Shown here: one piece after another, positions 15,707 to 21,152 of the stretch
Layout: each line of letters starts with the position of its first letter
Position numbering within the stretch: the first letter of the stretch is position 1
NCBI GenBank assembly: GCA_048772705.1
Contig: JBLWGC010000159.1
Span: 186,001 to 250,000, forward strand
DNA length: 64,000 nucleotides
Source: Leidyana gryllorum EB-2025a
Taxonomy: Eukaryota; Protista; Apicomplexa
Direction: 5' to 3'
Notes under the pieces: generated by a model
What the model was told of the DNA's origin: nothing
What the model saw: only the letters and a program-made list of their open reading frames with translations
Databases searched by the model: none
Translations under genes and position numbers: made by a program

Positions 15707-18700
15707 ATGACGGTTCAAGTAGAGGGTCCAAACCCGAGGATAGACTATGTAGCCAGGGCGATGGCCCCAAAGTCTCAAGCTGGAAGAGGAGTTGATCATG
15801 CGCGCGAAGACCTTCCCAGACACCCACACTTGTTGAGCTGCGAAGAAGCGTGCGCTTTCTTTGGGACGCGTCCAACGGAGGGTCTCAATCAGAAGCAGGT
15901 TCTGGACCATAGAGCCCGCTACGGTGTCAACGCCTTGGCGGAGAAGGAGAGTAAATCACTGTGGGTGTTGATCGGAGAGCAATTCGAAGATCTCTTGGTG
16001 CGAATTCTTCTGGCTGCGGCAGTCATCTCGTTTGGCCTCGCGCTCCTCGACGGACGTGACGATGGCAACTCGGCCTTTGTCGAGCCGGTTGTCATTTTGC
16101 TCATTCTGATCGCGAACGCTATAGTTTCGATCTGGCAAGAAAACAATGCTGAGAAGTCACTTGAGGCCCTCAAACGCTTACAACCAGATGTGGCCCACGT
16201 CCTGCGAGACGGCCATTGGGTTACTCTCCCTGCGGAGGACCTGGTACCAGGTGACATTATAGAGGTCCGAGTCGGCGACCGTGTTCCTGCCGACTCGCGC
16301 GTCCTCAGCGTTGCGACGACCACGCTGAAAATGGAGGAGTCTCAACTCACGGGAGAGGCTTCCACTGTCTGCAAGGTGAGCAAATGAGTTTCACTTCAAT
16401 CTGTAATCCAAATCACTTCATCTGCAGACATGCGACCCTCTATATACGGACATGATGGGGTGCGCGATCCAGGAGAAGCGCAATCTCTTGTTCGCAACAA
16501 CTACGGTAGCTCTGGGGCGTGCAACAGCCTTGGTGGTTGCGACGGGAATGGCTACAGAGATTGGTATCATCCAGGCTGCAGTTGTCGATGCCGGCGAAGA
16601 GGAAGAATCTTCGCCTCTGCAGCGGAAACTGGATGAATTCGCTGAGCAATTGTCAAAGGTTATCTTCTTCATCTGTATAACTGTTTGGCTGATCAATTAC
16701 AACCACTTTGCCGTACATGGCTCCTACATTCGAGGATGTGTGTACTACTTCAAGATTGCCGTGGCGCTCGCGGTCGCGGCTATTCCAGAAGGTTTACCGG
16801 CTGTTATTACCACGTGTTTGGCCCTGGGAACCAAGCGAATGGCCAAACGAAGGGCCATTGTGCGACGACTCTTGTCGGTCGAAACATTGGGATGCACCAC
16901 AGTCATTTGTTCGGACAAGACTGGAACCATGACAACAAACCAAATGAGTGTTGTTCGTTTTATGATGCCCAACGAGGGAGACAAGCTGACATCCTATGAA
17001 GTTGCGGGACACAGCTTCGACCCCGTCGGACTCATCACCGAACTCCACTTCGATGGAGTCAATTGGCGCGCCGTCCGGAATTTGCCCCATATTTCTGCAA
17101 CGCAACCCGCTCTGGCTGAACTTGCCCGTGTTTGTGCAATGTGCTCAGAAGCGTCGCTGCAATACGAGAATGGAGTGGTCAAACGTACGGGTGAACCCAC
17201 TGAAGCGGCTCTCAAAGTCCTCGTGGAAAAACTCGGTTGCCCCGACCTCAATTTGAATTCTCGAGCATTACAACAAAAAGATCGCCCTTCTGCTGAGGTC
17301 TTCTGCGATTATTGGTCCTCAGACTATGAGCGCAAGGCCCTTTTGGAGTTCAGCAGAGAGCGAAAGTCAATGTCCGTGCTGGTTCGTCGGGTATGTCACA
17401 CAATATGCCACCACCCCAAACACACACACTCCTGCAGAGAGACGAGAACTTCAACCGCATGTTCGTCAAAGGTGCTCCTGAATCCATATTAGAGCGTTGC
17501 ACAACCGTCATGATGCCCAACGGAGTCGTAAAACCACTAACAGACTCCTACCGAGCCTACATTCTGGAGCAGGTGGACAGCGAACTTGCGTCCCGTAAGT
17601 ATAAGAAACGCTCCAACTTCTTCTCATCACCGCCTACAACAGGTGCACTGAGGCCCCTCGCGATGGCTATGAAGATGAATGCTGACCGCTTGGCTGACTA
17701 CGATGGTCCACACCACCCCACTCATGTGGAGTTGATGGAGCACGAGAATTTCGTCAGGTAATGTCATTGAGCGGTGCCTATGGTGAATGTGCGTGCTGTG
17801 CGGGAATATTGAATTTCCACTCACCCGATAACTTGGAGGGGGACTGATTTCGTCCGGATCGTTCGCCGCCCCTTTGCCGACCGCCTTCTGAGCGGTCTTC
17901 GTGGCTGGCTTCATGTCTTTGAGGACGTCGCTGGTGTTTTCCAAACGTCGCAGGGGAGGTACAGGGGCTGCTTCCCCCTCGTTCTGTGTCTCCGCCGACC
18001 CCTTCCGTTGGTCGCGCTCCACCGGTAGTTTGCCCATCAATGCTTCTGCGCGACGCTGCTGGCTTCCGGGCTTGACGTCAGTTCGCCCGATGTACGGAGG
18101 CGAAACGCTTCTTTTACTGAAAAGTCTCTGATATTCCGATGTCATCGGGTCCGCGATAGCAGACGCTTGATGCCGGAATTGGGACCCAGCGCGCTCCACA
18201 GTTCTGGGACGAACCGTTGGAAGGGGTGCCCTTCCTGACCTCGCGATGGCAGACCGTGCTACACTCGCACGTACATCCATAGGAGCCGGTGGCCTTTGTC
18301 CTGGAGCCATATGGGGCCTCAGCTGTGCGGTGAAACCATTTGGACGAGGGAGGACTCCTAGTGGTCGTAGCCCGCCCGGCGGCCCACGCAGCCCCGGCCG
18401 AGGAGGCACCCCGGTCATGGGCCGTTGCTCTACGAGCCGTCCAGGCGGTCGCGGCATAGCTCCACGCCCTAACGGTCGCAGTAACGGTGCCCGAGGTCCA
18501 ATACCCCTCCACCCGAGCCCAGGCGGCCGTCTGATTTGCGCAAGCGGAGTTTTACTCAATCGTCGGCCCGGCGGTGCCCCGTTCGGCATCACAGCTGGAC
18601 GGAAGGCACTGGGACGCTTTCTTAGAACTCCCGGCCCTGGGGGTCTTGGACGCACCCCCACCACGCCTATTCCTGGGCGTTGTGCCATATGGAAGGCTGG

Positions 18701-21152
18701 TCCAAGTAGCGGTTGAAGTGGCTGTCGTATGCCACCGCCAGCACCCGCAGCCCCGGGACCCGGCCACCGTCCACGCAGTGTCATGGGGGAGGCTTTGGGT
18801 AGGGTGGGTCGTAAGGGCACAGGACCGAGTTGCTGCACTCGAGACCGAAACACATCCTCGGTGGCTTTTGGGTTGATAGGAGTGTCGTGCCATGGCGGCG
18901 TTGATGTCTTCTTCGGACTCAGTGGCGGAGGGTTCTCGTCGGCCACCGTTAGGCCCGACTTGGATCGAAGCGGCATATCGAGCGGTCCTAAACCGAGGGC
19001 TTCGCGAAAGTTGATATCAGCGCTGGTGCCCCGCCGGAAGCCCCCGTTTCCCCCCGTTTTGCTCAACATTGAGAAGCTGCGAATGGTGGTTCTACGAGAG
19101 GGCTCGCGCATAATCATACCACCGGGAGGCGGCAACGCTGCAATCTCCGGGTGTGGCAAACCTGTGAAAGTCCGGGCGGTATCTCCGTCAAAGTCGGGTG
19201 TCGGTAGACTGGATTGTGTCGGAGATCGATCTGATCCGGTCCGACTTGGAGTGGGAGGCGGTCCACGATCGAGATGGCTGTCATGGCGCAGTAATCGGGA
19301 GGCCAGTCCTCTTTTGGGCTGTACAAACCCGCTGCGACTCGCCATACTCTTCGATGCACTCGACTTGGAGCGCGTTGGGAAGCCCTTGGGCGGGACTTGC
19401 TTTGGTGGAGCTCCGGTACGAAAAGTTTGAACTTCGCTGAACGGGTTGAAGGAAATCCTTCGCGGGCGCGAGGCATTCTTCAGTCCTGCAGAAGAGAGAG
19501 TGCGGACGCTCTTTTGAGGGGGAAGAGTCTTACGGATGCTTTCAGACACTGACTGCGCGGCTTGGCGGCCGGCTGGGGCGAAGCGATGGGGTTCATGTGA
19601 TTGGGCCTTTGGTCGCTTGCGAATCGCGGGCCGAAGTGATGTGGTCATGTGATGTGGTGCTTATCTGGTGCAACTCTGAATTGTGTGTAATATGTAATCT
19701 TATCGCAGGTTTGAGCAGCAGATGACCTTTTTGGGCGTCACTGGTCTTATGGACCCCCCTCGACCAGAAGTTTTGGGCAGCGTCTCAGACTGTTCTCGGG
19801 CCGGTATTAGGGTAATAATGATCACCGGAGACAACAAGGCTACCGCAGAAGCTATTGCAAGACAATGTGGTATACTGGGCGCTCCAGGCACACCCGACAA
19901 CGTCTTCAAGTCGCTCTGTCAACAAGCGTCCTTCACTGGACGTGAATTCGATATGCTCAGCGATGCGGAGAAGCTTCAAGTGTTGAGTCATCCCCGAGGT
20001 GCGGTCTTCTCGCGCACAGAACCTCGACACAAGCAGCAAATTGTCAAACTCTTGAGAGGGATGGACGAAGTTGTTGCCATGACTGGCGATGGTGTCAATG
20101 ATGCCCCCGCCCTTAAGCAAGCAGACATCGGTATTGCAATGGGTATCACGGGAACAGAAGTGGCAAAAGAGGCATCCGCAATGGTGCTCGCCGATGATAA
20201 CTTCCAAACCATTGTGGCAGCGGTTGAAGAAGGCCGTTCTATATACAATAACATGAAAGCCTTCATTCGCTATTTGATCAGTAGCAACATTGGCGAAGTC
20301 GCTTCCATCTTCCTTACCGCAGCCCTCGGTGTGCCAGAGGGATTAGCTCCGGTGCAGCTCCTCTGGGTCAATCTTGTCACTGACGGAATGCCTGCCACCG
20401 CTCTGGGCTTCAACCCTCCCGATGTTGATGTAATGAGGAAAGCACCCCGACGCAAAGACGATCTCCTCATCACGCGTAAGCTTCTATTCAACAACGCCCT
20501 CCTAACAATAATTCCTCAGCTTGGGTATTGTTCCGCTACTTCACCATTGGAATCTATGTCGGCATTGCCACCGTCGGAATATTCATTCAATACTTTATCT
20601 CAACAGCCGCCCTGGCCGATGGCCACAGCATGCTGTCCTACAGCCAACTCACTCACTTTGGCGAGTGTTCAAAGTGGTCAGGATTCACACCAGCCCAAGT
20701 GTATGGGATGAACGAAGACCCCTGTTCATACTTCGCGGCTGGCAAAATCAAGGCCTCCACACTTTCTCTGACCGTCCTGGTTATCATTGAAATGCTTAAT
20801 GCCTTCAATGCACTTAGCGAAGATTACTCGTTAGTCCGTCGCCCACCATGGGTAAGTCCCAACCCTCTACTCTCAAACATCGATCTTTCAGAGCAACCCT
20901 TCGCTGTGCCTCGCTGTCTTTGTCTCCGTTGCCCTACACTGTTTGATCTTGTACAACGGTCCTCTGGCACGCATTTTCGGAGTCGTGGCGCTGGATTGGA
21001 ACGACTGGCGGCTGGTGCTGCTCTGGAGTTTCCCAGTCATAGTTATTGATGAGACCCTGAAGTTTTGCGCTCGGCACTCTCTACGACCAAGGGCTGTGCT
21101 GAGTTCTATGTGGAGAACAGTAGTGCGTAGAAATGATGAGAAAGATCACTAG
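15707..21152 (+). CDS. SERCA: SERCA-type (P2A) Ca2+-transporting P-type ATPase
   Basis: [63 protein letters not shown] and LWVNLVTDG motifs; several short introns plus one 1951-nt intron (17758-19708). Confidence 0.97.
17754..19648 (-). CDS. Nested antisense gene: basic Pro/Arg/Gly-rich disordered protein inside the SERCA intron
   Basis: Open frame from ATG 19648 to 17825, a 47-nt GTGAGT...TAG intron (17824-17778) and a last exon APLNDIT* ending with TGA at 17756-17754. Confidence 0.8.

Follow-up and report, generated by a model that had tools for sequence, protein, structure and literature searches.

Why does the gene for an essential calcium pump carry a giant intron in a genome in which introns usually measure about 45 nucleotides (nt)? 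The question is raised by a locus of the gregarine (Apicomplexa) Leidyana gryllorum EB-2025a, whose assembly is compact (15.5 Mb in 237 contigs). The locus lies in a stretch of 64,000 nt (contig JBLWGC010000159.1, positions 186,001 to 250,000, forward strand), referred to here as the window, and positions given without further specification are counted from its first nucleotide. There, a gene for a SERCA-type Ca2+-ATPase is interrupted by 1951 nt that are almost completely occupied by a reading frame on the opposite strand. We consider it probable that this frame represents a real nested antisense gene, conserved in position, fast-evolving and lineage-specific, which would encode a basic, proline-rich, disordered protein and whose presence would explain the giant intron. 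The host gene and the parts adjoining the intron are positioned as follows:

15707-21152, plus strand: SERCA-type (P2A) Ca2+-ATPase gene with six introns; the start is approximate (ATG at 15707 or 15761)
17643-17757, plus strand: SERCA exon just 5' of the long intron, ending with ..MEHENFV(R)
17758-19708, plus strand: long SERCA intron, 1951 nt, phase 2, GTAATG...ATCGCAG
19709-20475, plus strand: SERCA exon 3' of the long intron, beginning with (R)[18 protein letters not shown]

The open reading frames (ORFs) of the host exons (approximately 15.7-21.15 kb, plus strand) carry the full P-type ATPase set of Pfam domains, i.e., Cation_ATPase_N, E1-E2_ATPase, Cation_ATPase, Hydrolase and Cation_ATPase_C. 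When a SERCA exon was compared with solved structures, SERCA1 and SERCA2 ranked at the top (E 2e-96), while SPCA (4e-65) and the Na,K-ATPases and others gave weaker matches. The P domain is 66-72% identical to that of other eukaryotic SERCAs. These matches identify the host gene as a SERCA (P2A) and not as a PMCA, SPCA or Na,K-ATPase.

Is the interruption of this gene a true intron? The upstream exon ends at 17757 (..AAT TTC GTC AG|GTAATG) and the downstream exon starts at 19709 (..ATCGCAG|G TTT GAG CAG CAG ATG), where the alignment of rabbit SERCA1 to the downstream exon begins at residue 586 (E 2e-96). In SERCA homologues that lack the intron, consecutive residues flank the gap (for P0128, residue 125 at 17758 and residue 122 at 19698). 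No SERCA residues are thus absent at this point and the 1951 nt must be spliced out. All three plus-strand frames across the region contain between 11 and 24 stops. The interval 17758-19708 is therefore taken as a true SERCA intron, and the predicted host protein is continuous only once it has been removed. A preliminary description of this DNA had SERCA spliced over exactly this interval and contrasted the length of the intron with about 50 nt for most introns here. Both statements hold: the borders are GT..AG in phase 2 with homologues continuous across the gap, and the five other SERCA introns measure 40-52 nt, so that the long one has about 40 times the usual length. Its GC content reaches up to 0.68 compared with about 0.52 in the flanks.

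What fills the intron becomes apparent on the opposite strand:

17825-19648, minus strand: principal part of the nested antisense frame, with 608 codons counted from its ATG at 19648; the predicted product is rich in Pro, Arg, Gly and Ser, with an isoelectric point (pI) of about 12

One minus-strand frame is free of stops between 19660 and 17630; counted from the SERCA acceptor, its first ATG lies 60 nt inside the intron. The frame fills 97% of the long intron, over which each of the five other frames holds 11-24 stop triplets. In 2000 dinucleotide-preserving shuffles, the longest open stretch averaged 187 codons and never exceeded 452, while the intron itself contains one of 634 codons (0/2000 shuffles as long). 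The preliminary description had already pointed out a long antisense frame starting 60 nt inside the acceptor, and this is borne out by its ATG at 19648 and by a length beyond that in all shuffles. GC contents at the first, second and third codon positions (GC1, GC2 and GC3) are 0.65, 0.61 and 0.56, respectively. GC3 equals that of the neighbouring genes (0.49-0.64), while GC1 and GC2 are raised. It is thus the codons for Pro, Arg, Gly and Ala that produce the local GC peak; the openness of the frame does not result from GC-rich DNA. Base composition also differs by codon position, revealing a 3-base periodicity (chi2 44, p 7e-8), with T making up 10% in position 1. We thus state with confidence that the antisense frame is not a product of chance and is longer than chance allows.

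The strongest further evidence comes from a second species. A search with the SERCA exon adjoining the intron led to a 14-kb Logan contig from another gregarine (SRR31860986, here L006). Its SERCA exon is 78% identical to that of the window in the best local alignment and 69% identical overall; for comparison, a transhydrogenase from the same sample is 64% identical to that encoded next to SERCA in the window. The L006 gene is interrupted at the identical codon and in the same phase (..NFI(K)|VEEDLTFVGL compared with ..NFV(R)|[10 protein letters not shown] in the window), and the interruption again harbours an antisense frame:

9031-10305 of L006, plus strand: SERCA intron, 1275 nt
10278 to 9046 of L006, minus strand: antisense frame of 410 codons, filling 97% of the intron

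Between the start of this frame and the acceptor lie 27 nt, and 15 nt separate its stop from the donor. The frame holds a single stop, compared with 11-22 in the other frames, and once more none of 2000 shuffles yielded a frame as long. The predicted product resembles that of the window in being basic (pI 11.4), rich in proline (17.6%) and free of hydrophobic segments. Upstream of SERCA, an Acyl_transf_3 gene is present in both species (7800-9311 in the window, 1976-3235 in L006), which identifies the two SERCA loci as syntenic. A comparison of SERCA intron positions in relatives had been suggested in the preliminary description, and its outcome, the same codon and phase with an antisense frame inside, indicates that the nested arrangement is maintained in a relative. 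That another gregarine species shares this layout speaks against a misassembly and in favour of a maintained gene. In contrast, SERCA is unbroken at this codon in all of 80 further loci drawn from metagenomes and metatranscriptomes; 34 of these were at least 6 kb long as fetched and are probably genomic. Within this sample, the intron position thus appears specific to the two gregarines and sets their loci apart from the other SERCAs.

At its 3' end, the nested frame can be read in two ways. The relevant features, together with the short SERCA introns, which were located by homology guidance, are:

17824 to 17778 (17778-17824), minus strand: candidate intron of the nested gene, 47 nt, GTGAGT...CCATAG
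17754-17777, minus strand: candidate last mini-exon, A P L N D I T stop, conditional on the 47-nt splice
17627-17824, minus strand: alternative unspliced continuation, 66 further codons with the stop at 17627-17629, antisense through the SERCA exon
16376-16427, plus strand: SERCA intron, 52 nt
17391-17437, plus strand: SERCA intron, 47 nt
17595-17642, plus strand: SERCA intron, 48 nt
20476-20519, plus strand: SERCA intron, 44 nt
20852-20891, plus strand: SERCA intron, 40 nt

The short SERCA introns agree with the short introns reported for gregarine genomes (PMC9250747). A motif of the form GTRAGY..(40-52 nt)..YAG recovers four of these five on the plus strand, and the 47-nt candidate is its sole occurrence on the minus strand in 17600-19720. 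When spliced, the nested frame would end with ..GCA CCG CTC AAT GAC ATT ACC TGA, with the TGA complementary to 17754-17756 and an overlap of 4 nt with the SERCA exon (17754-17757). If left unspliced, the tail past 17825 would be His-rich and hydrophobic, unlike the rest of the frame, and this change in character makes the spliced ending plausible. The putative 47-nt terminal intron, followed by a stop across the SERCA donor, is thus a plausible arrangement, and the predicted protein would comprise 615-673 residues, depending on the ending. The overlap with the donor is not shared by L006, where the antisense frame stops 15 nt within the intron. Elsewhere in the window, a minus-strand frame of 488 codons (43385-44848) lies wholly antisense to a plus-strand frame of 915 codons (42860-45604) and is probably a shadow frame. 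This example shows that real exons in this DNA can have long open frames on their antisense strand, and the unspliced tail over the SERCA exon therefore carries little weight.

The predicted nested product consists of 15% Pro and 13% Arg, has a pI of 11.95 and lacks hydrophobic segments. An AF2 single-sequence model reached a mean pLDDT of only 41, and the protein is probably disordered. It contains no Pfam domain even at E 10. The metagenome contig scan and the exact cluster look-up returned nothing for it, neither this product nor that of L006 has a match in the ESM Atlas, and a comparison of the region with Rfam gave no match at E values up to 1. An RVxF-type motif (RRISF), the type by which PP1-interacting proteins dock, is present at residues 63-67; about 0.5 chance matches would be expected, as estimated from composition. 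In the L006 product, the sole counterpart, RSVSW, lies towards the other terminus, and the motif is not conserved in position. Nucleic-acid binding or a role as a proline-motif scaffold may be proposed for the product with low confidence. The hallmarks of a mobile element or introner-like insertion were also looked for and are missing: the nested element occurs as one copy in its own genome in both DNA and protein searches, is free of terminal repeats (a search for tandem and inverted repeats gave only trivial matches) and, as stated, lacks any Pfam domain at E 10, including that of a transposase or endonuclease.

Several observations weigh against a real, maintained gene and deserve to be stated together. 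The synonymous codon use of the nested frame shows no gene-like bias by codon-usage likelihood, in a genome that is nearly unbiased, so that the test has low power. In L006, the 3-base periodicity is weak (p 0.03). The two nested products share no alignable similarity (BLASTP E 1.8; the Smith-Waterman score lies below the mean of composition-matched shuffles), and their homology therefore rests on position, strand and character only. No relative of the window product was detected by a word-index search of 5.8 billion clusters, in which the best 8000 candidates were scored, or by HMMER over 1.84 billion representatives. Finally, the searched collections do contain a transcript of the neighbouring gene from a close relative. 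A contig of 3300 nt from SRR28734874 (L007) carries an uninterrupted transhydrogenase ORF of 1025 amino acids, 87% identical to that of the window, and probably represents the spliced mRNA of a near relative among the gregarines; yet no relative of the nested product turned up in these collections. This is weak evidence against strong expression of the nested gene, and divergence or stage-specific expression explains it equally well.

In principle, the missing similarity between the two products, the lack of relatives wherever they were searched, the missing codon-usage signal and the weak periodicity in L006 could all be accommodated if the long intron were conserved for other reasons or simply tolerated, and served as a cradle for unrelated frames that arise independently or turn over rapidly, with little or no transcription. 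However, two frames on the same strand, each filling 97% of its intron, each of the same odd composition and each longer than in 2000 shuffles, are hard to obtain without selection. Moreover, even conserved enzymes of the two species are only 64-78% identical, so that loss of recognizable similarity is to be expected for a disordered protein. We therefore regard the cradle as unlikely. Somewhat less probable still is a decaying, no longer functional relic of an inserted mobile element or a transferred gene. The elevated GC content (0.60-0.68 compared with 0.52 in the flanks) and the absence of the intron position from the 80 other SERCA loci would fit such an origin, but the single copy, the lack of terminal repeats and the absence of a transposase or any other domain do not, and a decaying relic would hardly have stayed free of in-frame stops over 2 kb in the window or 1.2 kb in L006.

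A further alternative dispenses with the intron altogether. SERCA would then be a split gene, with the two halves expressed separately and an ordinary opposite-strand gene between them. The upstream part is indeed followed by an in-frame TAA, and both species have an in-frame ATG at the start of the downstream part or shortly before it (window, 19722; L006, 10280). The TAA, however, arises automatically from a GTAA donor in phase 2, the splice sites are canonical and lie in the same codon phase in both species, and the break would fall within the nucleotide-binding domain. To our knowledge, no split P-type ATPase has been described, and we consider this explanation very improbable. The in-frame ATG, its sole footing, is probably coincidental. 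Note that the L006 SERCA frame stays open for about 110 codons upstream into the intron. Hardly credible, finally, is an artefact, whether a misassembly or a sense-strand coding insert in SERCA with an open antisense shadow: apicomplexan SERCAs do carry lineage-specific inserts, but all three plus-strand frames over the region contain 11-24 stops and the arrangement recurs in another species that was assembled independently.

The most probable reading thus remains a nested antisense gene, and its consequences can be outlined. A separate opposite-strand gene would be housed in the SERCA intron and would determine its length. Transcription of SERCA would pass through the nested gene, and splicing at the canonical GT..AG sites would remove all 1951 nt from the pre-mRNA, while the nested gene would be transcribed in the opposite direction. 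With 97% of the intron taken up by the frame, the promoter or 5' end of the nested gene would have to be located within the final 60 nt of the intron or on the strand opposite the downstream SERCA exon, its 3' end would have to extend into the antisense of the upstream SERCA exon, and the two transcription units must overlap at the host exons. Such an overlap may allow interference. The nested protein would evolve too fast to be recognized between genera, and the gene itself would block loss or shrinkage of its host intron. Transcription, translation, the terminal 47-nt splice and any function of the nested gene are inferred from sequence. Regulatory interference and an origin by insertion are speculation. 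A more far-reaching version holds that the giant intron is not ancestral, that the antisense gene was inserted into the coding sequence of SERCA in an ancestral gregarine and was intronised, or grew within a small intron, and that overlapping transcripts turn it into a stage-specific antisense switch on an essential Ca2+ pump; we give this version only a slight chance of being correct.

Antisense genes nested in introns are well known from animals, e.g., OMG, EVI2A and EVI2B in an intron of NF1, F8A in intron 22 of F8 and a pupal cuticle gene in Drosophila Gart. The SERCA case would add another example of this arrangement, with an opposite-strand gene inside a host intron and a host that splices across it. 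It differs from the animal cases in that it belongs to a very compact genome, in which introns measure about 45 nt, and that the frame leaves so little of the intron free that untranslated ends must overlap host exons. Furthermore, the predicted product is a lineage-specific disordered protein without a family. In Giardia, likewise a protist with a compact genome, introns have persisted at sites of overlap with antisense genes (Xue et al. 2018, PMC6545626), and in both organisms persistence of an intron can be explained by a gene on the complementary strand. In Giardia, however, the introns sit within sense-antisense overlaps and antisense transcription was verified, whereas the gregarine frame lies essentially within the intron, would set its length and is known from sequence alone. 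If correctly interpreted, the locus accounts for an outlier intron in a strongly compacted genome and joins Giardia as the second case among protists in which an intron is kept in place by a gene on the complementary strand. The protein that the nested gene would encode, basic, lineage-specific and fast-evolving, is of a kind probably overlooked by gene callers whose training relied on conserved genes. Should the two transcripts truly overlap, the locus would offer a natural setting in which to examine how sense and antisense transcription interfere at an essential pump gene. Knowledge of SERCA itself is unchanged.

Gene order near SERCA is partly conserved among gregarines. The window transhydrogenase ORF (21429-24020) adjoins SERCA, and SERCA is likewise followed by transhydrogenase in a contig from ERR10900105 (L003, 233-3810). 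The latter contig begins inside the SERCA C-terminus and the junction is not covered. In the L006 species, transhydrogenase resides on a different contig (L004) beside a SEN1-type helicase, and the transhydrogenase contig of Gregarina niphandrodes is not syntenic with the window. Among named sequences, the window transhydrogenase is closest to those of Gregarina sp. and Blabericola migrator (64-66%), with 59% for Gregarina niphandrodes; Logan contigs reach up to 87% and 74% identity. These matches place the genome among the eugregarines.

In another part of the genome (C213:324000-333999), a minus-strand ORF of 437 amino acids (4871-6184 of that piece) without Pfam match lies directly upstream of a plus-strand ORF of 547 amino acids (6216-7859 of the same piece). 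The latter spans positions 7-285 of the 288-position Bestrophin_2 profile, and a brief inspection showed no obvious splitting of the domain around the minus-strand ORF. Within the window, three further long frames encode products with raised proline content (Pro 9-14%, GC2 near 0.6), namely 38120-39142 (minus), 50983-52575 (minus) and 12192-13529 (plus). About 200 nt at the 5' end of a plus-strand frame (38939-40672) are shared with the first of these, and two of the three are also raised in arginine (11-12%). Proline-rich, often basic low-complexity products seem to be common in this genome.

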